DNA of 64,000 nucleotides, taken from positions 6,696,001-6,760,000 of the forward strand of contig OU015566.1 of assembly GCA_907165135.1 (NCBI GenBank), written 5' to 3'. Position 1 is the stretch's first letter. Each line of letters begins with the position of its first letter. The stretch comes from Oikopleura dioica (Eukaryota > Animalia > Chordata). Both the position numbers and the translations under genes were made by a program. The notes beneath the pieces were generated by a model, which was not told where the DNA came from, ran no database searches, and saw only the letters and a program-made list of their open reading frames with translations. Shown piece by piece: positions 4,718 to 49,250 of this stretch.

Positions 4718-5221
4718 ATGAGCGAAACCAACAACGACCAACAAGATCGACCTCCCCACCATCGACGAGTCGGAGACGAGGAAGATCGACCTCCTCACCA
4801 TCGACGAGTCGGAGACGAGGAGGATCGACCACCCCACCACCGACGAGTTGGAGACGAGGAAGATCGACCACCTCACCACCACCACCGACGAGTTGGGGAC
4901 GAGGAAGATCGACCTCTCCACCATAGACGAGTCGGAGACGAAGAAGATCGACCTCCTCACCATCGACGAGTCGGAGACCAGGAAGATCGACCACCCCACC
5001 ATCGACGAGTTGGAGACGAGGAAGATCGACCTCCCCACCATCGACGAGTCGGAGACGAAGAAGATCGACCTCCCCACCATCGACGAGTCGGAGACCAGGA
5101 AGATCGACCACCCCACCATCGACGAGTTGGAGACGAGGAAGATCGACCTCCCCACCATCGACGAGTTGGAGACGAGGAAGATCGACCTCCCCACCATCGA
5201 CGAGTCGGAGATGAGGAGTAA
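4718..5221 (+). CDS. Low-complexity protein made of 12 x DRPPHHRRVGDEE
   Basis: ATG at 4718. Differences between 39-nt units are mostly synonymous in this frame (CCT/CCA, CAT/CAC, GTC/GTT, GGA/GGG, GAA/GAG, CGA/AGA). A short extra exon near 5246 is possible. Confidence 0.65.
   Translation: MSETNNDQQDRPPHHRRVGDEEDRPPHHRRVGDEEDRPPHHRRVGDEEDRPPHHHHRRVGDEEDRPLHHRRVGDEEDRPPHHRRVGDQEDRPPHHRRVGDEEDRPPHHRRVGDEEDRPPHHRRVGDQEDRPPHHRRVGDEEDRPPHHRRVGDEEDRPPHHRRVGDEE
4745..5218 (+). repeat. Coding 39-bp tandem repeat, 12 units, with a duplicated 3-unit (117-bp) block
   Basis: Unit GATCGACCTCCCCACCATCGACGAGTCGGAGACGAGGAA. Units 5-7 and 8-10 share the diagnostic variants GAAGAA, CAGGAA and GTTGGA. Confidence 0.95.
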
Positions 5222-10600: not shown

Positions 10601-12029
10601 TTTTGATAAGTCATAATTATTGATATGAGCATCAGTACTTCGCAATAAATTTTGGATAAGTAGAGTTATTTTGCAAAGATAATAAAATAGGGTTTGCGCT
10701 TGAATCATGACATTGAGCTAGTGAATCGTTAAGAGATCCCATTATCAGTACTGATAAGGGGTTCTCTATCACGAGAGTTAGGTCAGTGAACTAGGGACAG
10801 AAGTACTTCTCTTATCAACATTTAGCGTCTTATTAAGAGATCTTTGCTGCAAAAACAAGCATCCAAATTTATGGTCTCAAAAGAGTTCACGGCTAGATCT
10901 TTTCTCGGTTCATTTTAGTGAGCGAAAAAGTTACGGTTTTAGAATCTTCTATTGTGAAATTAATTTTCTTCTCGTAAGAGGATAATCTCAACCCGGACTG
11001 TAAATCTTACGTGTGTTTATCCGAGGGAAAGGCGGAAATCAACCGAAAAAGTACTAGTTCCTTTTCGCTCCTTACTGTATAATTTTCCCACATTTCGCTT
11101 CTCTCAGCTGTTTTTGCAAGTGCCTTCTTTTTGGTTAGATTGATAAAGCGGAGAAAAACATCTTCAGAGGGGGAGTGAGGGGACTTCATCAGTCTGGACT
11201 TTAATCATACGTTTGAGGCTAGTCTAATTCGAAAATAACTACGGTTCTCTCGACATGAAAGAAGTCGGAAACGGGAAGCATCGAAAATGAACTGGCGAAG
11301 ACTTTTTTTGATTGATGCCTGAGAAAGCATATCTCGGATTTCGTTTACGATTAAGACCCGTTTTCGGGTAACAAAGATTAATATATAATAAGCTTACTGT
11401 GTTTAAAACAACAGTCCTAGTAAAATAACCGATAAAAAAAATACTCTATTTTCGATCATAATTTGTTCATTTTGGTTTTCGAAGAATTAATATCTAGAAT
11501 AAAGATATAAAAACATGCTTAATAAAAATTGGGTAATGCTAGCCATGAAATCAGGACGGCCGAATATCGTCATAAGTTCCAAACCGCTAGAAAAGCAAAA
11601 AAAAAAAGTACCAATTTTGTCGTCATTTTGTCTACCATCAGGCGCTAGAAAAAGAACCAGCGCGCAACTTTAGACGCGCCAATTATTTGGAAGTTATCAC
11701 TTTTCCCCGTTCCAGTAGCGACCCTTTTTTCATGTGTCGAAAAAAATGCACTTGGAAAAGCGAGAAAAGCGGATCACAGAAATATCTGCTCAGAATACGC
11801 GCCGCAAAAATAATAAGCACAATGCTTCAGAGTGTCGCAGATGGCCACTCACGGCGCGCTAGAAAAATAAAGCAAAGGCAAGTTAGATGACAAGTTTGGG
11901 CAGATTTCAAGGGCCTTAGGTTTTAAGAAATCTTCTTTGTACTTGAAAAATGGGTGAGTCCAAAGGTTCTAATTTGGAGCAATCCAGCGCCTGTTTTGAC
12001 GGTAGTAGGGGGTTATCATTCGAGCTGCC

Positions 12030-12145
12030 CCTAATCCTAAACCTAACTCAGGGGGCTACGCCCCCCGGGACCTCCCTCCTAACGCCTAAACCAGGGGGCT
12101 TCGCCCCCCGGACCCCCCTTAAGAGTTCCAAGTCCCTAACCCTAG
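12030..12145. repeat. Dispersed G5/C5 double-hairpin repeat with telomere-like (CCTAAC) flanks, copy 1
   Basis: CAGGGGGCTACGCCCCCCGG and CAGGGGGCTTCGCCCCCCGGACCCCCC flanked by CCTAA(A/C)C motifs; a second copy lies at about 27685-27815. Confidence 0.7.
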
Positions 12146-13174
12146 CCACTAGCCCAGATTCTAGAGATATTGGATGGCTCGAATCATAGGCTCGAATGAT
12201 AACCCCTCTCCACGGTTTCGACGCTAGAAATCTTCAATCTTGGGCACAAATACTCGAAGTCCATCGACAATCTTACACCCCTCATTCGAGGCCCAGAGGA
12301 AATGCATACCGTATCGTGTCTGATTATGATAATTTTCATACGAAAAGACCTTTTAAGTAGCCACAACGCGTAACTTCTTGATGCGTTATCATGGGAATTT
12401 TTAACTAGAATTTGAGTGCAGCTCTTTTTAAAAAAAAGGTGCGACGCGTACGGTAACAACTCAAACTTCAAAAAAAGGTTGCCTAATCGTCAAAAAGTAA
12501 GAACCGCTCCTTGGCTGGAAATAAATATCCAGGGAGTCGAAATATCCTGGCTGCTTTGATCCAGCGACATATTTGATAAATATTCCTGAGGATCCTTAAT
12601 CCAACTTGCTCCCCCTAAACTCGTAATGTTTTTTCTACATAACATAAACAGGATCGCGTGAAGGTCTACTATTTTGAATTCCGGATCAAATAAAGTAAAG
12701 CATGTTCAAATTACTTTCATTATTCGGAATAAATCGTTTTGCAAATGCTTACTATTAAAAAAGCTAAGCATAAATGAACAATTTTCAACAAATAGAACGA
12801 CTTTATGGGGATGATGTCTGATACCGATAAAAAAAATTTTGACAAATTTTGCGTGGGCGGATACTCGGCTGCTGATTAGCCAGTTCGCTGAATCCAGGCT
12901 TCTGACTGTTTGAAAATCTCCACGCAAAGTTTGTCGAAATTTTTTCGTTGGTTCCAGACACCTCCCTGTTTTATGAGAACCTTCTTCTTGCATGAAGTTT
13001 CATTTTCAAGGTAGGTTGAGTGTTTAATAAGTAGGCTAAAAAATTTTCTTTCTTCTGAGGATCGTTAAAGGCGAAAAATTTGCGTAAAAAGTGTCTTAAC
13101 TTCGTCAATTGTAATATTTTTGCTGAAAAATTCTTTTTTCTTATTTTATTTCGATTTCTAGATTAAGAAAAGAT

Positions 13175-20744: not shown

Positions 20745-22899
20745 TTATTCAGGAAGTTGGGAATTTCGAGAAAGAGAATTGAGATCCGCAAGCCAGGACG
20801 AAAAGGCATGAATGAGCTGCAGCGAATTACCATCGCGCAAATGCCCCTTGACTGCTTCGGAAATCTTCTTGTGGGAAAAGCCTCGAACTATTCGGAAGTA
20901 GCTCCAGAACCAGATCCAGGTCTGACAAAACGTATCCTGCGGAGACTGGAAATTTACTTTGACGGATTGAAAAATTGGGGCCTTCTGAAATTCTTGCTAA
21001 AGTTGATTATCTAAGCCAGGGTTTGAAATCTGACGAGCTCACGAGCACGTGAGCACGTGAGTGAGCTCGATGAGCATGCTCACGCGTGCTCATGCTCACA
21101 GAATTCTGCGCCCTTCGTGCTCACGCGTGCTCATGCTCACCAATTATAGAGCACAGTCGTGCTCACGCGAGCTCATGCTCATGGATCTCTGAAAGGACAA
21201 ATTCTGTGCTCATGAGCAAGTGAGCACGTGCTCAAAGCTCACATTTTGACGTGCTTACAGTCGTTAACGACTCAAATTTGCAAGTTTTATAAGCGGTAAC
21301 AAGTCAAATTTGAAGTTCCGCTAGTGGGATTTTTGGACCGTCTCAGCCCCGTTCCTTGATTTCTTAATTTAAGGGGCTTGACGGCCCTTCGGGCCGTCTC
21401 AGCCCCGTTCCTTGATTTCTTAATTTAAGGGCTTGACGGCCCTTCGGGCCGTCTCAGCCCCGTTCCTTGATTTCTTAATTTAAGGGGCTTGACGGCCCTT
21501 CGGGCCGGCTCAGCCCCCTTCCTTGATTTCTTAATTTAAGGGGCTTGACGGCCCTTCGGGCCGTCTCAGCCCCGTTCCTTGATTTCTTAATTTAAGGGGC
21601 TTGACGGCCCTTCGGGCCGTCTCAGCCCCGTTCCTTGATTTCTTAATTTAAGGGGCTTGACGGCCCTTCGGGCCGTCTCAGCCCCGTTCCTTGATTTCTT
21701 AATTTAAGGGGCTTGACGGCCCTTCGGGCCGTCTCAGCCCCGTTCCTTGATTTCTTAATTTAAGGGGCTTGACGGCCCTTCGGGCCGTCTCAGCCCCGTT
21801 CCTTGATTTCTAATTTAAGGGGCTTGATATTGGCTAGGAACTCCGAGGTGATCAATCTCAGTAATGTCCCCAACCCCACCCTCACCCATTATTGTTAAAA
21901 CTCAAACTATCCGAGATTTTGTTTTTATTATGGTTTTTATTAAAATTTTTGAAAATACTCTAGGTACAATAGCAGCTTATGAGCACGAATGAGCATGCTC
22001 ACGTGTGCTCATGCTCACGAAAATATGAGGATCCCGTGCTCACGCGTGCTCATGCTCACTGAAATTTGAGCAGCCCCGTGCTCACGCGTGCTCATGCTCA
22101 CTGAAATTTGAGCAGCCCCGTGCTCACGCGTGCTCATGCTCACTGAGTTTTGAGCACCCACGTGCTCACGCGTGCTCGTGCTCACGCAAAATTTTCAGAT
22201 TTCAAACCCTGATCTAAGCTGCCTGCCTCCGATTTATCTGGTGATCAATCATATTTAAGACCATAGATTGAAGGCCCTAGAATTCCCGCGATTTTGCAAT
22301 CCACCCTATTGGCGAAACACTTTTGACATCGACTTCTTCTGAACTTTTCCAGATGGGCAATCTTTCCAGGCTTCTCTTGAACTTTGAATTGAGCCTTGTT
22401 CCTTCTGGATCAAAATATTCCATGATCAACTTTTTGCCAGATTTTCTCAGAAAAGCGCAAGTAATATGCCCCGGCGTTGAAATAAGGACAATTTGTTTTT
22501 CCTCCGGTCGCCGCTTGTATAGAGTGGTTTCTTTTAGGGTTCCGCTATCTTACGCTGTCTGTGTATTTTCTTAGTCAAACAGCTACAGTAAGACTCAAGC
22601 GTTTTAGAAGATCCCATTTCTTTCGCAAAAGTAACATTGAAATTGTCATCGAAGTTCAAGTCGGCGTCTGGAAAGTCTTCTAAATCTTCTCCTTCGTACC
22701 GTGGAAGGCGCAAAATTGAGCAGCGAACCTTTTTCGCGCGTATCATTTTGGCCATGACCCGGTTCATGTCGAATTGGAACTGTCGCCATTTCCTGTAGAA
22801 AGATAGGGATTTGCCAGAATGTGCGCGGAGCTTCGCCAGACGAGGGATGAAAGGACGGCTTTGAAGGGTGGTTGATAGAAGGGAGAATATGAAACTCAA
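20745..22899 (-). CDS. Putative clan CE (Ulp1/adenain-like) cysteine protease, with a hAT element in a probable intron
   Basis: STPGHITCAFL...MEYFDPEG (His, Asp), then exon KAPIFQSVKVNFQSPQDTFCQTWIWFW (Gln, Cys) ending SQLPE* with an overlapping AATAAA. Several intron boundaries are ambiguous. Confidence 0.45.
21017..22211. mobile_element. Non-autonomous hAT element A (1195 bp)
   Basis: 17-bp TIR CAGGGTTTGAAATCTGA; 8-bp TSD ATCTAAGC at 21009-21016 and 22212-22219; subterminal GTGCTCACGCGTGCTCATGCTCAC repeats at both ends; no transposase ORF. Confidence 0.93.
21338..21827 (+). repeat. 56-bp hairpin satellite array 1, about 9 units
   Basis: Unit GCCGTCTCAGCCCCGTTCCTTGATTTCTTAATTTAAGGGGCTTGACGGCCCTTCGG. 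Confidence 0.97.
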
Positions 22900-26210: not shown

Positions 26211-27684
26211 TTTCTTCCTTGGGAACCTATCTTACTTTAGCCTTACAATTGTTTTGTTGTTTTTGGTCTTACATAATTTGAGAAAAGAAAGGCTGGCTGG
26301 ATTGTGGAAAAGAATCATGAGCAGTGTGGTTAAGCCATTAAAAGGTTTAAGAATGGATAATTCTTGGCGTGGACTGAAACCCAAGTGCAAAGCAGGTGGG
26401 GATTTTTCTTCTACGCCGGATTAAAACTCAGATCAGCTGCGGACAATTTTTTGAAGGGTTATACAATTTCGCTGACTCAGCTTTTCTAGTTTTTGCACAT
26501 GGTGGCTGTCGATTTGAAGTTTTAAAGGTGACGTTAAAGCTGAAATTAATCTGATTCACAGTCAATACAGTAGCTCGTAGAAAAGTTAATATTTCAACAT
26601 TTACATACAGAAAAAGAATTAGCTGTGAAGAATCCGTCAATTTTTAATTTATTGACTTCAATGTCAGGAAGAAGATAATTTGAAAGAAATGGTGGCATTA
26701 AAATTCATCTCTCATCGTTGCAGGAACGCGTGCGCCAGGCCAGAAGTGGCAATATTTTTTATTGAGAAAGTAGAAAAAGATAATTTTTTATTCTCAACCT
26801 TGCTTTTTTCATTTGCTTCGGTTCATTTCTGAGATTTTGGATAGAGGGGATAGAGCAAGATGAAGATTTTTTTGTTTTTGTTGGCTTTTTCAGAAAAGGT
26901 TTGTTTTGCGAAAATTTCATATTTCTAACACTGGGCCGCGAAATTCATGGGAACATAATTTTCCGGACAGATAAGCAACCAAGCACGTTCTATTCTTCCT
27001 CTAATCAGTGGCTTCTTCACCAGTTGGGCTTGTGATAGCTGTGTATAGAGTCTATACTATAGACAAATATTTTCAGGTACAAGGCCGTGGATTTTGGAGC
27101 AAATGCAAAGGTGCCTTGGACGAAATGAAAAGTGAGCAGAGTTACGACGACCATTTGGCTCTGCAAAACTCTCCTGCTCATCTTATGCTAGGAAAGGTCA
27201 AAACCCTATTAATGTCCGGATTTCCACCTATGTGAAAGTCCTCGACCTATCATTTCCGAGTCCTCCGACTCTCTCACACTAAGCCCGCCGCGTGAATATC
27301 AAATCATAACCCTAACCCTAACCCTAACCTACAGTTCTTGGGGTTTTTGTTTCGAACGATAACGGTATTGAATTCTGCGCAAAAAGTTAGCTTTGAGTTG
27401 AAAAATCGAGATTTGATTTTTGATAAATTCGAGTCTCGCAATATTAAATTTCTCTCTATCCATCAAAGAAATCAAAAAGATTACAAATTCGAAGTCCGCA
27501 AAAAAGTGCAGAATATTGTCAATCACGTTCAACACAGGAAAAATTAGATAAAGATGGTTTTGACTTGATTAAGACAACTGCATCAAACAGATATCGAGGA
27601 TAACTGGAAGACGAGTAAAGTAAGTTCTCAATAATAACGAGTTCCTTTTTAGAAAAATATGATCTTGACCCTTATATGATACCC

Positions 27685-27815
27685 CTAACCCTTAATTTTA
27701 ACCCAGGGGGCTACGTTCCCTCGGACCCCCCCCCCTAAAGACTACCACAGAGGGCTTCGCCCCCCGGACCCCCCCAGTAGGTAATTCCAGCCCTCTAACC
27801 CTAGTCCCTAACCGA
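27685..27815. repeat. Dispersed G5/C5 double-hairpin repeat with telomere-like flanks, copy 2
   Basis: CCCTAACCC...CAGGGGGCTACG...GGGCTTCGCCCCCCGGACCCCCC...CTAACCCTAG, matching 12030-12145. Confidence 0.65.
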
Positions 27816-28840: not shown

Positions 28841-28999
28841 TATAATATAATATAATATAATATAATATAATATAATATAATATAATATAATATAATATAA
28901 TATAATATAATATAATATAATATAATATAATATAATATAATATAATATAATATAATATAATATAATATAATATAATATAATATAATATAATATAATATA
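28841..28999 (+). repeat. (TATAA)n microsatellite, about 32 units
   Basis: Pure pentanucleotide tract ending at the TA that flanks the MITE at 29000. Confidence 0.97.
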
Positions 29000-39085: not shown

Positions 39086-39315
39086 TTTTATCTTTCATGA
39101 TCGTCCAATAAGAGCAAACTCAGACACAGAACTGTAGTCGGTCTTACTGTTCTACAACAATTTGTTACTCAGAAAAATCTTCTTTTTTCCCAGGAAAGCA
39201 AATTATAGAGATTAGACAAGCAAAAATTTAATCTTGAAAGTAACCGCGATGTTTATGTCAGTGCTCCTTCGCCTGATAGAAAGTGAAGTTGAATGAAGTG
39301 TCTGAGAACATAAAA

Positions 39316-42300
39316 ATGAAATCGAGTATTTTCTTTTCTGTTGCTTGTTTTAGCGTAGAGGCAAATGTCAGGTGTGGAGACATACGTTTCGGAGATCCCG
39401 GTCAATTCGGTCCAGTGAGTTTGACAAGTTACCCTGGCTCTGGAAACACTTGGGTGAGATATCTTATCGAAGAGTTTACTGGCTACTACACAGGGAGTGT
39501 CTACCACGATGGAAAGCTTTTCAAGGGAGGATTCAAAGGAGAAATAGAGGACTGGAGCGAAGGAAGAGTCGTCATCACGAAATCCCATACTTATCGACCG
39601 AAAGAAAATGCTCTGGCTGATGCAATTATGCTCATAAGAAATCCTTATGATTGCTTTTTGTCTGAATTCAACAGAGTTATAAGCGGCGCCGATCACACTG
39701 GAAAAGCAGAGACAAAAGGTACTTATTATAACCATAACAGTTATATTTTCATAATATTTTTGGTCTTTCCTTGTGTCATAATGAGATGATAACTATCCTT
39801 TATCACAATTAGCGACACAATGCATGCTACATAAATAGCCTTTTTTAGATTTCATGTCAGAAAGATGGGTTAAAAACGAATTTGAAAAGTACGCAGGACG
39901 CTGGTATCGACTGTACGCAAATTTGATCAACAGTGGATATGACACTCTTCCTATCATTTACGAAGGTTATTTTCCAGCACCAACCATTATTTATAAAATT
40001 TAAAGATATGAAAGCAGACCCCCAGAAAGAGATGGAAAAGGTCGTCAATTTTCTGGATGTCCGGACTGACTATGAGTCCAAATACGAGTGTCTTTTCGGA
40101 GAAAACTCCCAAAGATTCAAAAGATCAAGCGGTAGAGACGTTGATCCATATCTTTTTGTCAACGAAGGTACGGTTTTGTCTTCAACTGTTTTCTTGAAAA
40201 TTTTTCAAAGAACACCTCAAGCCAGTAAACGAAGCGATCAATAATCTCTCTGCTCTGCTAAAGAAAACCCATGGGTAGGGTGGCCACATAAAAATAAGAC
40301 CCCAGAGAAACCCCCCAAAACCCCCACTAGAATGTTGCACGTGATCAGTAGAATCACGTAGAGAAGAAATAAAACGAGAATTAAGGGAGTTTCTTTGAAA
40401 AAATTGAGATCAAAGGACTCGAAAACAGCCAAAATAGCCAAAAATCACAAAAATCACCAGCGGAGTCACGTGATCTTGAATTTTTTTGGTTTCTTTCCAG
40501 ATTTCGAAAGATCAGGGCAAAACTCATCAACAGTAAGTGCAGCTCCGACCATGATCAACCATGGTCGGAAAAAAATTGATTTAACATATTTTTTTAACTA
40601 ACCCTAACCCTAACCCTAACCCTAACCCTAACCCTAACCCTAACCCTAACCCTTCGGGCCGTCTCAGCCCCGTTCCGTGATTTTTAAATTTAAGGGGCTT
40701 GACGGCCCTTCGGGCCGTCTCAGCCCCGTTCCGTGATTTTTAAATTTAAGGGGCTTGACGGCCCTTCGGGCCGTCTCAGCCCCGTTCCGTGATTTTTAAA
40801 TTTAAGGGGCTTGACGGCCCTTCGGGCCGTCTCAGCCCCGTTCCGTGATTTTTAAATTTAAGGGGCTTGACGGCCCTTCGGGCCGTCTCAGCCCCGTTCC
40901 GTGATTTTTAAATTTAAGGGGCTTGACGGCCCTTCGGGCCGTCTCAGCCCCGTTCCGTGATTTTTAAATTTAAGGGGCTTGACGGCCCTTCGGGCCGTCT
41001 CAGCCCCGTTCCGTGATTTTTAAATTTAAGGGGCTTGACGGCCCTTCGGGCCGTCTCAGCCCCGTTCCGTGATTTTTAAATTTAAGGGCTTGACGGCCCT
41101 TCGGGCCGTCTCAGCCCCGTTCCGTGATTTTTAAATTTAAGGGCTTGACGGCCCTTCGGGCCGTCTCAGCCCCGTTCCGTGATTTTTAAATTTAAGGGCT
41201 TGACGGCCCTTCGGGCCGTCTCAGCCCCGTTCCGTGATTTTTAAATTTAAGGGCTTGACGGCCCTTCGGGCCGTCTCAGCCCCGTTCCGTGATTTTTAAA
41301 TTTAAGGGCTTGACGGCCCTTCGGGCCGTCTCAGCCCCGTTCCGTGATTTTTAAATTTAAGGGGCTTGACGGCCCTTCGGGCCGTCTCAGCCCCGTTCCG
41401 TGATTTTTAAATTTAAGGGGCTTGACGGCCCTTCGGGCCGTCTCAGCCCCGTTCCGTGATTTTTAAATTTAAGGGGCTTGACGGCCCTTCGGGCCGTCTC
41501 AGCCCCGTTCCGTGATTTTTAAATTTAAGGGGCTTGACGGCCCTTCGGGCCGTCTCAGCCCCGTTCCGTGATTTTTAAATTTAAGGGGCTTGACGGCCCT
41601 TCGGGCCGTCTCAGCCCCGTTCCGTGATTTTTAAATTTAAGGGCTTGACGGCCCTTCGGGCCGTCTCAGCCCCGTTCCGTGATTTTTAAATTTAAGGGCT
41701 TGACGGCCCTTCGGGCCGTCTCAGCCCCGTTCCGTGATTTTTAAATTTAAGGGCTTGACGGCCCTTCGGGCCGTCTCAGCCCCGTTCCGTGATTTTTAAA
41801 TTTAAGGGCTTGACGGCCCTTCGGGCCGTCTCAGCCCCGTTCCGTGATTTTTAAATTTAAGGGGCTTGACGGCCCTTCGGGCCGTCTCAGCCCCGTTCCG
41901 TGATTTTTAAATTTAAGGGGCTTGACGGCCCTTCGGGCCGTCTCAGCCCCGTTCCGTGATTTTTAAATTTAAGGGGCTTGACGGCCCTTCGGGCCGTCTC
42001 AGCCCCGTTCCGTGATTTTTAAATTTAAGGGGCTTGACAAAGGCTGGGAAGTCTGAGTTGATCAATCTCAGTTTCGTCCCTAACCCCGCCCACCTCCGTC
42101 CGATGTTAAAATTCATATTCTTCACGTTTTTAGATTTGTTATGGTTTTTATTGATAATTTTTTCTTTTCAATTTTATCTCTCAATTGTTGAATTCTTTTT
42201 GGGCTCGACTTAGGCTTTTTCTTTAGTCAAGACCCTTCACATACAGTTTTTAATGACCTTTAGACAGCTTTTTAAAGAAAATGAAAATTTTCGAATTTTT

Positions 42301-42649
42301 TCGGGAAAAAAATTTCTTAAACGAAAATTTGAATTTCACGGAGCTGCACTCACTGGGGTTGTCAAATGCCCTGAATTTGATGATCCCAAAATTAAAATTG
42401 AAAAAAAATGAAAATTCAGACTCCGGAGCCAAAAAAACCGAAAAAAATGAGAAAAAATCGATTTTTCGGGGGCTACACCCTTAAAATTTTGAAAAATTAT
42501 ATTTTTTTGGGGAAGCTTTGGACCAACCCTAATCGGTGGTGGGGTTAGAAAAATCGATTTCTGAAGGGTTAATTATGGCCAATTTTTTATGTGGCAGCCC
42601 TACCCATGGGATCGAACTGCCAAAATCTTATTTGAGAAATTTACGTTAG
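39316..42649 (+). CDS. WSCD-like sulfotransferase-domain protein; last exon split by hAT element B
   Basis: SYPGSGNTWVRYLIE PAPS-binding loop, ITKSH, LIRNPYD and IIYEDMK. Removing the element plus one TSD restores ...LLKKTHG|IELPKSYLRNLR* (stop 42647-42649). Confidence 0.88.
40599..40652 (-). repeat. Interstitial telomeric tract (TTAGGG)9
   Basis: Nine perfect TAACCC units on the plus strand, fused directly to array 2. Confidence 0.97.
40650..42038 (+). repeat. 55/56-bp hairpin satellite array 2, 25 units
   Basis: Unit GGCCCTTCGGGCCGTCTCAGCCCCGTTCCGTGATTTTTAAATTTAAGGG(G)CTTGAC. Confidence 0.97.
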
Positions 42650-42800
42650 ACATTTTACACTGCCATTATCGAATAAGAATTCACAAGAAAAATATCCGCC
42701 TTGGAATCATTTATTTACAAATCTGGCAAAAATTCAGTGTCTGAGCGAGCATATAAAAGAATCGTTAGTTGAGCTTGAAGCGCAGGCAGGTTGAGAAGGT

Positions 42801-45800
42801 TTATTCTAGGACTTCGAAGGTGGCATCGGTTTTGATATCCTGAAAATAATGATCGCCTTGTAATTTGAAAATGCCTTACTTGGATTTCTCTGCTGTCGAT
42901 ATCGATGAGAACCGTGTATTTCCCGGATTTTTCGGGGATGAAATCGAAGTTCATCTGGTAGGTCGTCTTTGGTTCAAGAGTTTGTCTAGAAAAAATGTTT
43001 GAAAAATGCCTTTTTGGAAAAACATACTCTGTGAAATTTCTATCAGTAAAGAGACCATTAGCTTCGACTGTCAAAGAAGCGTTTTGAAGAGGATAATCCA
43101 GAGGATTTTCGATCGTGATTACGCAGCTGCAAGCATCTTTTACGTACGCTTTTCTTCGATTGAACTAAATTTTTTGTCAGACAGAAATCTGGCACATGAT
43201 ACTCACCGTTATCGACACCATAGGAGGAACACTGAGCGAAAAGTCTTGTCTGGCCGTGTGCGTCTCGATCTCGCCTGTTGATGGATTCTTGACCTTGATC
43301 ATTGCAACTGCTCTCATATGTAGGGTAAACGCACAAAAAAATCAACTTTTTCCCTCGAAAGAGAATTGACCTGAAACTTGGCATGGTAATAGATCATGCC
43401 AAACTACTTTTAAAAATTTTTTTTTCAAAAAAATTTTTCAAGGTTTTCAACCTTTTTAAGCCTGGCAAAAGGCTAACTTCTGAGTGGATCATGGTAGAAG
43501 GCTCTTGAATAGCTAGATCGACGCGGACTGAGCTCCTGATCATTTTCATAAAAAAAAATTTAGTGACAATATCTCCGATGACTCAGAAATCGCCGAAGAG
43601 TGTTACGTAACCTTGTTATGTAACACTAATTAAGACATTTAATTGCTGGAGGACCAAAGAAATACATCTCACTACTTTTCAGCCCAAAAAAATAATGACA
43701 ATATTTCATCCCTTTTTCCGGAGGACCTAATGGAGGACTTTTTGAAGAAAAACAAGCCATTGCTGGAAAAATTTTTTTTTTTTTTAAGTTTTTAAAATTT
43801 AGTTTTAGATATAAATTAACGTTTAAAATATTGAAAGCATCCCGTCACCCTCATAAAAACAAATTTCTTAAAAAAAACTTTCCCAAGAATAAACACCATA
43901 ATAGAAAAACCAGTAGGGGGAATATGGTAAAAAATAGAAACGGGTGAGGGCGGGGTTGGGGACAGAACTAAGACTGATCATCTTAGTCTTGTTTTCTAAT
44001 CCCGGCCTTTGTCAAGCCCATTTTTAATTAAAAGCCAGGGACGGGGCTGAGACGGCCCTTCGGGCCGTCAAGCCCATTTTTAATTAAAAGCCAGGGACGG
44101 GGCTGAGACGGCCCTTCGGGCCGTCAAGCCCATTTTTAATTAAAAGCCAGGGACGGGGCTGAGACGGCCCTTCGGGCCGTCAAGCCCATTTTTAATTAAA
44201 AGCCAGGGACGGGGCTGAGACGGCCCTTCGGGCCGTCAAGCCCATTTTTAATTAAAAGCCAGGGACGGGGCTGAGACGGCCCTTCGGGCCGTCAAGCCCA
44301 TTTTTAATTAAAAGCCAGGGACGGGGCTGAGACGGCCCTTCGGGCCGTCAAGCCCATTTTTAATTAAAAGCCAGGGACGGGGCTGAGACGGCCCTTCGGG
44401 CCGTCAAGCCCATTTTTAATTAAAAGCCAGGGACGGGGCTGAGACGGCCCTTCGGGCCGTCAAGCCCATTTTTAATTAAAAGCCAGGGACGGGGCTGAGA
44501 CGGCCCTTCGGGCCGTCAAGCCCATTTTTAATTAAAAGCCAGGGACGGGGCTGAGACGGCCCTTCGGGCCGTCAAGCCCATTTTTAATTAAAAGCCAGGG
44601 ACGGGGCTGAGACGGCCCTTCGGGCCGTCAAGCCCATTTTTAATTAAAAGCCAGGGACGGGGCTGAGACGGCCCTTCGGGCCGTCAAGCCCATTTTTAAT
44701 TAAAAGCCAGGGACGGGGCTGAGACGGCCCTTCGGGCCGTCAAGCCCATTTTTAATTAAAAGCCAGGGACGGGGCTGAGACGGCCCTTCGGGCCGTCAAG
44801 CCCATTTTTAATTAAAAGCCAGGGACGGGGCTGAGACGGCCCTTCGGGCCGTCAAGCCCATTTTTAATTAAAAGCCAGGGACGGGGCTGAGACGGCCCTT
44901 CGGGCCGTCAAGCCCATTTTTAATTAAAAGCCAGGGACGGGGCTGAGACGGCCCTTCGGGCCGTCAAGCCCATTTTTAATTAAAAGCCAGGGACGGGGCT
45001 GAGACGGCCCTTCGGGCCGTCAAGCCCATTTTTAATTAAAAGCCAGGGACGGGGCTGAGACGGCCCTTCGGGCCGTCAAGCCCATTTTTAATTAAAAGCC
45101 AGGGACGGGGCTGAGACGGCCCTTCGGGCCGTCAAGCCCATTTTTAATTAAAAGCCAGGGACGGGGCTGAGACGGCCCTTCGGGCCGTCAAGCCCATTTT
45201 TAATTAAAAGCCAGGGACGGGGCTGAGACGGCCCTTCGGGCCGTCAAGCCCATTTTTAATTAAAAGCCAGGGACGGGGCTGAGACGGCCCTTCGGGCCGT
45301 CAAGCCCATTTTTAATTAAAAGCCAGGGACGGGGCTGAGACGGCCCTTCGGGCCGTCAAGCCCATTTTTAATTAAAAGCCAGGGACGGGGCTGAGACGGC
45401 CCTTCGGGCCGTCAAGCCCATTTTTAATTAAAAGCCAGGGACGGGGCTGAGACGGCCCTTCGGGCCGTCAAGCCCATTTTTAATTAAAAGCCAGGGACGG
45501 GGCTGAGACGGCCCTTCGGGCCGTCAAGCCCATTTTTAATTAAAAGCCAGGGACGGGGCTGAGACGGCCCTTCGGGCCGTCAAGCCCATTTTTAATTAAA
45601 AGCCAGGGACGGGGCTGAGACGGCCCTTCGGGCCGTCAAGCCCATTTTTAATTAAAAAAAAAAATAATAAAAATTTTGAATTTTGATTTCTTCCATCATC
45701 TTGATGTTTTCAATCCGACAAAGTCCTCCAAGAGTCCTCCGTGTGATCACATGATATTTATCTCTTAATTTTAGAAAAAATTAAGGATTTAATTTACTTT

Positions 45801-48208
45801 AATTCAAAAATCTTCATTCTTCCAGCAAATTGCTGGTCTTCCAGCAATGAGCTAGAGGTCCTCCAGCTGATTCCTGATCGATCAGAAGTATGGTCACTAA
45901 ATTTTTTTGTCTCAAAATGATCAGAATTTCAAGGCGCGTCGAACGAGACCTCCCACGGCTTTGTAACCCAATCCACTCGAAAAATAGATTTTTTGAGCTC
46001 TTTAGAGGGCGCTAGAATGGTGTCAGGTGGTTTTTTCAAAAAATTTTTTTCGGAAATATTAGTTTTTCATGTTGGGCAATCACGTCACCAAAAATTAAGT
46101 TTCTACGACCCCTAGAAAAAAAGCTGATTTTTTGTGCGTTTACCCTACTCATATGACTCTGGCCATCGCGAGCCAGGCGGCCTTCGTACTCTTTCTTTGG
46201 AAAAACAACTGAAGAATTGAGCTGATCGCGGAGGAACTTCTGCTCCAAAGCACGCTGAGCAATCACAGTATTCACTCCGCCTCTGATATTTGGTTCAATG
46301 AGATATGCTTATAAGCAAAACTGATTTTTTGTTGAACCAAAACTGTAGTAGGTAGAATAGAGAGTTAATTCAGGCTCCTCGACAAATTCGATGACATTGC
46401 TATCAGCAGAAGTGACCAAAAGCTTGATTTCAAGATCGTCACCGATTGAAAATTCTCTCGTAATGATTTCCAATTTCAAAGTCGAACGACTCTTATTCAA
46501 AAGTTCTCGTTGAATAATCGAGTAGTTCTTCATCATGTGATCTGTCATGTCTCGACTGTAATTTCCGCCAAAAGTGACTGCGCGCTCGAAGGACTCTCGT
46601 TCTTCTTCTGATCCTTCCCTTCAAAAAAAAAGCTCAAAAACCGCCCCTTAGTTTTTTTACTAACCTGAATTTGTATTGATCAGTCAAATCCTTTCTTGCG
46701 AAATTATCTCTTCCTTCCGCTTTCGTCGAAATATTGAAGCCAACTGCGTTTGTTCTTCTTTCAGTCAGTTCAATAATTTCGCCAAATTTATTCGTCATCC
46801 AAGTACATCTATCCGCATTGACCTCGCCAAAGAGGAACTTCGTGTCATAATTCACAAACGCTTGTCCTTCTCTCACAGCCTTTACTGGCGCAGGGCCACA
46901 CTGACTGACACCGTTTGATTCTTCTTGCGGCGTTGCGTCTACTGCTTGCCAGCCGTCGTAGCCCATGCTTTTCGGGATGTCTGGTCGCTGAAGCCAGCAC
47001 TCGTTCCAGACGTGAAAGTTCCAGACGGAGTCAGAGCTCCACTTCAAATCCTTGCCGGATTCATCGATGAAGACATCAATCGTCATCGTGTCATCCCCAT
47101 CGTGGGCAGAAGCAAAATTGGTAACAGACCTTGCTGGAATCCCAACTGCTCTAAGAAGAGTCGTCAAAAGTCCAGAGAAGACCCAGCACTGTCCATATTT
47201 AACCGGTCTGTATCCATTCTCGACGTATTGCTTGCAAATGTTGACCGATCCATTCCAAGCCGTTGGTGCTTTTCCACCATCGTACTCGCCCGACCAGTTG
47301 CCTTGAAGAACACCATCAAAGTTGCATGAATTAGCATTTGAGCTCAGCAATCGCACGATTTTGATCAGGTCTCTAAGCCAACTTCCACCAGACGCCTTTG
47401 CTGTTCGATGATCATTCGCAAGAAGATAGCAAACAAGATCAAGAACTGGCTCTTGAAATTGCCCGTAGATCCATTTCTTAGGACCGAAATTGTGAACACT
47501 CCCTCTCCAGATTGCGCCGACGTCGTTAAAGACATATTCATCCAGGAATTCGTCGCTGTTGTTGAATAGACCGACCCGGGGCTTGTCAAAGTGGCATCCG
47601 TCCAGTTCAGACATGGGATTAGCGATGATATAAATATTTGGCTGGGAAGAAGAAGAAATGCTGATGGAGTCGTCCACTAGAAGGCTTCTCAATGATAACT
47701 AAAAATGATGAAAACCAATGATTTTAAAACCTAGCCAAACCTTGACGGAGTACTTTCCAATAGCTGCTGTCGGAGGAACATTGACTTCGACCTCAATCGT
47801 TTCATCCTTCACTTCAAGCGTTCCTGTCCAGCCGAGTTTATCCAATTTTCCATCTTCCTTGCAATCGACAATGGCCATTGTGCCGTATTGAATAGCTGGA
47901 GCTTTGCCAGTTGAAAACTCGAGCCTGAGCGTATCTCCAGCCGAGTTGAACTCACGCGTGAACGTAACCTTGAGTTTTATCACTCCAGCGCGCCGCACGA
48001 TCAGGTTTTTCTGCTCGTACATGTCTGTTCGGTGCTCTTTTCGATTTTCATCGACCAACCAGTCGACTGGATCCTGGAATTCACCTTCCTCGATTCCATC
48101 TGTTTCAGTTCCTCCAAGCTCGTTGTTGAATGGCTTCGCTATCTTCAGTTCCAAAGGCTTTGCTAAAAGCAAAACATGAAAACAGAACAGCTGATTATGG
48201 GCCCTCAT
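42801..48208 (-). CDS. TGM: Transglutaminase, with a coding exon interrupted by hAT element C
   Basis: Intact catalytic triad: GQCWVF, FHVWNECW and WQAVDATPQE. N-terminal LIVRRAG sandwich and C-terminal barrels (IENPLDYPLQNASLTVEANGL); stop at 42801. The start codon is uncertain. Confidence 0.95.
43321..46147. mobile_element. Non-autonomous hAT element C (2827 bp)
   Basis: About 30-bp TIR TAGGGTAAACGCACAAAAAA(A)TCA(A/G)CTTTTT; 8-bp TSD CTCATATG at 43313-43320 and 46148-46155; degenerate subterminal inverted arms (about 43430-43770 versus 45720-46050). Confidence 0.93.
44011..45655 (-). repeat. 56-bp hairpin satellite array 3, about 29 apparently identical units, inverted relative to arrays 1 and 2
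   Basis: Plus-strand unit GGGACGGGGCTGAGACGGCCCTTCGGGCCGTCAAGCCCATTTTTAATTAAAAGCCA. Confidence 0.97.
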
Positions 48209-48368: not shown

Positions 48369-49250
48369 ATGTCAAGAATTCAAGCAATAACAGACAGAAT
48401 CGATTTTGAAAGCAGATTTCCGAAGAGACAGCTTCCTCTACTCACGAAAACCGACTCGTACTCGAGCACTTTCGATCTTTGCCCTTTGGTTTCACGACCA
48501 GAGACTCCTAATTGGAAGCAAGTCCAAATTCAAATCGAAAACACGCCACTTATTCAATCAAAACCGTAAGTAACAACCTCTGAGGGCATAAGTTATGCCA
48601 GCTTTGCTTAGTTAGGGTTAGGGTTAGGGCAAAATCTCGGATCCCTGTCTGAAGTCATCCATCAATTTCTGGCCTCCAGACAATTTGACGGTGATAAATA
48701 AACTGCGAAGTTTAATGATTTCTAAAAACCATTCATAAAAAAATGATGATGTATTTTTTTGCTTGGCAAGCTCAAGGGGTCGTTGAACCGTTTTTTCGAT
48801 GATTGTTCGGAATTAAAAAAATCTTAATAAATCAAATGCCGCGGTAAATGAAATAATTAATTATACTGCTTCAGGGTAAAATTCACAATAGACATGCGGA
48901 GCGTTTGCGCTATCATTATTCTGGCCTCTACTTTGTATTCTCTCTATTATCTACTGTCGCTGGTGAATGGAGAGTCTCTCAACACGCATTGGTAAAGGAA
49001 GAAAATTATTTTCTTCTGACGTTTTACAAGAAAATTGACTTACAAGGCTTTTTCTTTTGAAATAAACCACAGAAACACTTCGACATGGTTGATATTTCTC
49101 TGCGTAAAAACGACTCTTGGTATTTCGTTAATCTAGAACAGCTCCGACCGCGACAACTCCTGAAGGGGTCTTCACTTTATGACCGAGTGATTGAACTCTG
49201 ATGATAAAAGCGCCCTGGGGCACACAGGCCTCAGACTCATACGTAAGCAA
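48369..49250 (+). CDS. Possible multi-exon membrane protein gene or pseudogene divergent from the transglutaminase
   Basis: MSRIQAITDRIDF... ending at a GTAAGT donor, and a later hydrophobic exon MRSVCAIIILASTLYSLYYLLSLV. I could not join the frames cleanly. Confidence 0.3.

Follow-up and report, generated by a model that had tools for sequence, protein, structure and literature searches.

The stretch of DNA analysed here, hereafter the window, spans 64,000 nt of the Oikopleura dioica genome (C4:6696001-6760000) in the OKI2018_I69 assembly, which comprises 64.3 Mb (64,281,565 bases) in 19 scaffolds or contigs and is built on Nanopore reads with an estimated error of 1.3% (PMC8008620). Within it, a perfect run of the telomeric repeat TTAGGG is found 6.7 Mb inside the 14.5-Mb scaffold C4, in a non-terminal position and a single orientation, embedded in an intact 2327-bp transposon (40276-42602; Table 1). 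The element is flanked by 8-bp target-site duplications (TSDs) and its termini, TAGGGTGG... and TAGGGCTG..., are short YAGGG-like terminal inverted repeats (TIRs) that match at 17 of 19 nt. An 8-bp target duplication together with YAGGG-type termini is the hAT signature, and the element is accordingly described here as hAT-like and non-autonomous. Its distal arm has five related copies in the genome. The hAT dimerisation domain (PF05699) scores above the Pfam cut-off at 9 places in the genome, which are candidate sources of a transposase for the element. The element and its target duplications (40268-42610) interrupt the final coding exon of a gene that resembles a sulfotransferase (PF00685, E = 6.9e-5; exons about 39283-40275 and 42611-42650); if the element is taken out together with one TSD, the frame of this gene is open for 13 codons and then meets a stop.

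Table 1. Features of the tract-bearing element and its borders, in window coordinates; L001 is the closest paralog.
Feature	Position	Strand	Description	Basis
Left target-site duplication CCCATGGG, 8 bp	40268..40275	.	Identical to 42603-42610	Direct reading
Left TIR TAGGGTGGCCACATAAAAA	40276..40294	+	17/19 nt match reverse complement of 42584-42602	
Distal arm of hAT-like element	40276..40597	-	92% identity over 321 nt to L001	
Interstitial telomeric tract	40598..40653	-	AGGG, then (TTAGGG)8, then TTAG; perfect 56-nt run	Sequence reading, TRF
4-nt overlap AGGG	40650..40653	-	Common to last satellite unit and telomeric register	
56/55-bp hairpin satellite, 25 copies	40650..42038	-		TRF, fold, unit spacing
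Conserved ~135-nt head, always adjoining array start	42039..42170	-		Genome-wide matches, constant phase
Head-side arm, including right TIR (42584-42602)	42171..42602	-	97% identity over 335 nt to L001; inverted repeat	
Right target-site duplication CCCATGGG	42603..42610	.		Direct reading

The interior of the element is dominated by a satellite array of 25.0 copies of a 56-bp unit at 99% match (TRF), in which units of 55 and 56 nt alternate. The hairpin previously noticed in this satellite is real: GACGGCCC and GGGCCGTC form an 8-bp stem around a 3-nt GAA loop, and a two-unit DNA fold reaches -37.7 kcal/mol (z = -7.3 against shuffles). The head that adjoins the array is widespread, with at least 215 first-look candidates genome-wide, 40 of which were scored at 79-100% identity. 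Beside the head, the array begins in one and the same phase in each of the 14 copies examined; its other end is copy-specific and in most cases falls within the last hairpin, in the 5' arm or the loop (paralog arrays finish, for example, in GAGACGG, GACGGCC, GACGGCCCG or GACGGCCCGAA). The preliminary description held that the array had been cut three bases past the hairpin loop. The junction lies 3-9 nt beyond the array ends of the nearest relatives, but the array does not obviously appear to be "cut", because paralog arrays also end in the 5' arm or loop of their last hairpin.

Two further carriers of satellite and head lie elsewhere in the window, at about 21016-22206 (TSD ATCTAAGC) and about 43321-46150 (TSD CTCATATG), and TIRs and 8-bp TSDs are present in all three. 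The succession of head, array and 3' tail (poly(A) in the third element, TTAGGG in the second) had raised the suspicion of a retrozyme-like or Penelope-like element, and this retroelement or ribozyme reading was abandoned because the distal ends vary among copies and all three carriers bear TIRs and 8-bp TSDs. An Rfam search for a ribozyme found none at the gathering score and gave chance-level matches only by E-value. Read in the same orientation, the array of the third carrier (44011-45657) has the loop TTC, as against GAA in the arrays at 40650-42038 and 21338-21827; its AT-rich half-unit differs too, and its plus strand finishes in an A-rich run. The head of the tract-bearing copy carries a single-base change (42083-42094, minus strand: GGGGTTAGGGAC, as against GGGGTTGGGGAC in other copies) by which an octamer resembling the telomeric repeat has arisen at a distance of 1.4 kb from the tract, probably a coincidence. 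The window also holds two other tandem arrays, a 39-bp repeat in 12 copies at 4743-5217 (89% match, possibly coding) and (TATAA)x32 at 28841-28999. Satellite arrays are known from DNA transposons and MITEs, and this system is comparable in that the 56-bp array and conserved head occur in 8-bp-TSD elements with different TIRs, three of them in the window; it differs in that the telomeric tract is an added, copy-specific event.

On the plus strand the tract is a CTAACC run of 9.3 copies, (CCCTAA)9.3, at 100% match by TRF, in agreement with direct reading, and on the minus strand the join reads ...GACGGCCCGAAGGG, followed by eight TTAGGG repeats and a final TTAG. As originally described, the telomeric tract abuts the hairpin satellite, with AGGG in register with TTAGGG, and the G-rich strand extends 5' to 3' away from the array side; this orientation and the 4-nt register are those expected if telomerase had been primed by a broken 3' end. 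The repeats are perfect, which marks the tract as young. TTAGGG is the telomere repeat of O. dioica itself, because contig C1 starts with ~3.2 kb of terminal CCCTAA repeats and the telomere motif matches that of the published assembly (PMC8008620). For a 12-nt telomeric word, the window contains 14 occurrences where 0.18 would be expected. No duplication surrounds the tract, and head-to-head TTAGGG/CCCTAA arrays of the kind left by fusions do not occur at it, the run having a single orientation and transposon sequence on its flanks. An exact-protein look-up with the open reading frame that ends in the tract gave no match.

The position of the junction within the satellite unit carries information of its own. 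When all 56 possible 3' ends on the G-strand side of the unit were enumerated, only one had 4 nt in register with TTAGGG and none had 5 nt, and the observed junction falls on that sole AGGG. A random break and join would fall there with a chance of 1/56 (p about 0.02, for a single event observed once). The junction position supports homology-guided priming, whether on a telomerase template or on telomeric DNA, since it is the only 4-nt in-register site among the 56 positions. This tetranucleotide merely happens to lie in the 3' arm of the satellite hairpin, and complementarity between primer and template explains the position without the hairpin, so that the hairpin-specific break proposed earlier appears unnecessary.

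Recurrence of the junction, and presence of the satellite in true subtelomeres, had been suggested as checks on a healing mechanism. With up to two mismatches allowed, the exact junction occurs once in the genome, and eight gapped patterns, combining two array anchors with telomeric words of the G-strand or C-strand on either side within 30 nt, found no second satellite-TTAGGG junction. All pattern searches, in both tract orientations, returned only this locus, and recurrent healing at the hairpin was accordingly rejected. At three chromosome ends (C1:794-3815, C4:835-3856 and C3:2913123-2916375) the first 3 kb inward contain no satellite, and a subtelomeric origin for it was discarded on the basis of these three ends. 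Two metagenome scans for an independent copy gave no match.

The strongest evidence on the history of the tract comes from related copies of the element. The closest paralog, L001 (C4:4.13 Mb), is colinear with both arms (on the head side, 90% identity over 227 nt in addition to the segment in Table 1) and has a similar array with 25 hairpin cores, but at the position of the tract it carries a 68-nt AT-rich linker. In a genome search with the L001 linker and its flanks, the tract-bearing copy aligns only from query position 80, the first ~56 nt of the linker being absent from it, whereas C2:5604123 and C1:14886497, which are about 78-79% identical in the arm, align from query positions 41 and 51 at 74-75% identity. 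Copies at C2:459 kb and C2:5.60 Mb were compared by coordinates and identity only. Because two distant copies also match the L001 linker while this copy is without its first ~56 nt, the linker is, on this comparison, the ancestral state, although the reference is a paralog and the exact ancestral sequence of this copy is reconstructed from it. About 56 nt of linker has therefore been exchanged for 56 nt of telomeric repeat. Such a deletion-plus-insertion is the pattern expected of an imprecisely repaired break and, as judged from the aligned copies, rules out the simple insertion of a mobile unit. The possibility that the L001 linker is itself a decayed satellite unit was also considered, and its score (24 against a null of 16.4 +/- 3.0) was too weak to be relied on.

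The same comparison settles the order of events, in that the arms are colinear with the paralogs and the TIRs and 8-bp TSD are intact, from which it follows that the transposon was present before the tract. The preliminary description had the telomeric repeats sealed inside a mobile element at a later stage, or a telomere-capped linear intermediate being captured; the first is contradicted by this order, and neither a healed end nor a captured intermediate agrees with flanks that belong to the same element copy in correct order and orientation. Taken as a whole, that interpretation is partly supported: the telomerase-type signature holds up, and the healed-end, captured-intermediate and hairpin-specific readings do not.

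The tract is best regarded, with a probability of roughly 0.6, as a short interstitial telomeric sequence (ITS) left as a double-strand-break repair scar in a pre-existing hAT-like transposon, with the repeats synthesized by telomerase. A break at the boundary of the 56-bp hairpin satellite and the AT-rich linker would have been resected to expose a 3' end reading ...GAAGGG on the array side, and this end could have paired with the template of the telomerase RNA. Telomerase would then have added about nine TTAGGG repeats, ending in ...TTAG. Joining of this lengthened end with the other, resected side of the same break, near an A-run of the linker, would have followed, with the loss of ~56 nt of linker. 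The break may have arisen from secondary structure of the array or, alternatively, during synthesis-dependent gap repair after hAT excision, in which the nascent strand would fall off its template in the array; the gap-repair route would yield the same product at the donor site. Rejoining may have proceeded by microhomology-mediated end joining, the pathway on which this species relies because Ku and classical non-homologous end joining (NHEJ) are missing. Such a join is plausible because O. dioica is described as being without Ku70/80 and classical NHEJ and as repairing breaks by alternative end joining with insertions (Deng et al., as cited in PMC6635534). A six-frame search for the TERT RNA-binding domain gave no match, and its controls were equally silent.

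The closest known counterparts are the short ITSs that mark repaired breaks in vertebrates, primates and rodents among them (Nergadze et al., 2004 and 2007, PMC2246262; PMC8537989; PMC7215372). These share with the O. dioica locus a short, perfect, single-orientation internal TTAGGG run, an "empty" reference without repeats, an accompanying flanking deletion and in-register nucleotides on the 3' side of the break. In primates and rodents, about half of the break-site ITSs come with a flanking deletion, 3 or more nucleotides are in register at no fewer than 33% of loci where <2% would be expected, and one illustrated mouse locus has the tetranucleotide AGGG in register, as here (PMC2246262). 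Some mammalian ITSs were likewise recognized from insertions inside repetitive elements, the empty site being rebuilt from the repeat consensus (PMC2246262). At the present locus, the corresponding observations are a perfect internal run, an empty homologue represented by paralogs, a ~56-nt deletion and 4 in-register nucleotides. The O. dioica case differs in its host, a tunicate that has a 64-Mb genome and is without Ku and classical NHEJ, in its empty site, which is a paralogous transposon copy and not an orthologous locus, and in the position of the break, where a hairpin satellite within a hAT element has its edge.

Two other systems resemble the locus in part. De novo telomere addition during chromosome healing shares telomerase priming, through 1-5 nt of complementarity, at a G-rich 3' end, and a G-strand that runs away from the retained DNA; healing, however, produces a terminal telomere and loses the distal fragment, and here the distal half of the element is kept 56 nt away. 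In Ac/Ds hAT elements, filler DNA and internal deletions result from abortive synthesis-dependent gap repair after excision, and classical hAT filler is copied from nearby sequence. The O. dioica element is similarly a non-autonomous member of the hAT family with an internal segment replaced by foreign filler, but this filler is pure telomeric repeat and the excision is hypothetical.

The most serious competitor to telomerase-mediated repair is a route to the same scar that involves no telomerase, in which the ...AGGG end anneals to a telomeric C-strand, an interstitial tract, or a telomeric transcript or fragment that is then copied, or in which such a fragment is captured; it is regarded as possible but on the whole doubtful. 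The copying could be performed by a repair polymerase, either as a Pol theta templated insertion or through a template switch in synthesis-dependent gap repair after hAT excision, and the capture could consist of a free telomeric fragment joined by two microhomology joins. Junction microhomology would be expected under these schemes too, and several hundred short internal tracts in the genome are possible templates. Sequence alone cannot separate telomerase from the copying of telomeric DNA or TERRA in trans. An insertion of 56 nt is, however, long for Pol theta templated synthesis, and a G-strand that extends the 3' end is obligatory for telomerase but one of two equally likely outcomes for fragment capture. 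The alternative end joining on which O. dioica depends yields insertions, according to the description of Deng et al. noted above, and Nergadze et al. name telomeric-fragment capture as an alternative to telomerase, though the mammalian tracts flanked by TERC sequence indicate telomerase itself (PMC2246262).

Very little probability is assigned to a chromosome break at an extruded hairpin that was healed into a functional telomere before being fused or sealed, or to the capture of a telomere-capped linear intermediate. De novo telomere addition would agree with the orientation and with an AGGG in register, and the hairpin is stable. The tract is nevertheless followed directly by the distal half of the same element, so that two halves of one copy flank it, in order, with intact TIRs and a perfect TSD, and only ~56 nt is missing relative to the paralogs. 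Nine repeats fall far below telomeres of ~3 kb, and the head-to-head repeats of fusions, a second junction of this type and the satellite at the chromosome ends examined are all wanting, as set out above. An assembly or polishing artefact is similarly improbable. The error of the Nanopore reads and the uniqueness of the junction in the genome might be taken to point to one, yet a chimeric read creates a single junction between unrelated sequences, and colinearity could be regained here only through two junctions spaced 56 nt apart; the tract, moreover, is perfect and its flanks match paralogs at 92-97%. Growth of a chance TTAGGG-like seed in the linker by replication slippage can hardly be credited: the region is repeat-rich and slippage-prone, as the alternating 55- and 56-nt units attest, but there is no TTAGGG seed in the linker of L001 or the two distant copies, the simultaneous loss of ~56 nt is left unexplained, and such an origin of ITSs is argued against by Nergadze et al. 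(PMC2246262).

The locus is one of many telomeric tracts in this genome. Interstitial tracts of at least 18 nt were counted for three of the six possible start phases; the sites numbered 38, 52 and at least 52, which suggests, by extrapolation from these three phases, ~300 such tracts in 64 Mb. For comparison, human has 83 ITSs and mouse or rat about 250 (PMC2246262). A start-phase preference was entertained as a telomerase signature and dropped, the impression of an excess of GG starts being an effect of the search pattern and the three counts showing no strong bias. The interval C4:6-8 Mb, which includes the window, is enriched, with 12 GG-phase tracts as against 17 on the entire 17-Mb contig C1. 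Other short tracts lie at 27307-27329 and 48611-48629 in the window, and one is present in L001. The (TTAGGG)3 at 48611-48629 lies within an apparent intron of ~115 nt (GTAAGT...AG), about twice the median intron length of the species. A MITE-like family (12020-12150 and 27680-27760 in the window; loci L033-L038 and L050) carries subterminal telomere-like repeats beside GC-rich repeats of 42-43 bp and has the common flank GCAGCTCGAATGATAACCCC, and it explains several of the genomic "interstitial telomeric" matches. At C4:1855349 (locus L048, 1495-1520), a near-perfect palindrome of 31 nt (z = 8.9 relative to shuffles) has a 26-nt TTAGGG tract at its exact centre, an arrangement that could reflect breakage at the tip of a cruciform or a palindromic MITE whose loop is telomeric. 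A telomeric-repeat cluster of ~500 bp, deep in scaffold C4 (C4:5191124-5191614), may lie at the join of two arm scaffolds, a presumed centromere gap.

Because O. dioica has lost Ku and classical NHEJ, it can be proposed that synthesis by telomerase or on telomeric templates, followed by microhomology joining, is a routine outcome of its break repair, with a scar density perhaps two orders of magnitude above that of mammals and a preference for DNA that forms structures, for example the palindromes and hairpin satellites of hAT elements. This generalization is speculative and rather unlikely to hold; if it did, the tract described here and the L048 palindrome would be its type examples, and telomeric tracts would form a readable map of past germline breaks. 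The locus is a tunicate example of an already known type of repair scar and by itself reveals no new mechanism. It nonetheless provides a clean, paralog-referenced case of telomeric repeats serving as break-repair filler outside vertebrates, in an animal without classical end joining, and the ...GAAGGG end at the edge of the satellite offers a concrete target for testing telomerase at induced breaks. The high apparent density of tracts in a genome without classical NHEJ is a more interesting lead than the single locus. The locus shows that internal TTAGGG in O. dioica need not mark where chromosomes have fused or once ended, a point that bears on how its heavily rearranged chromosomes are read.
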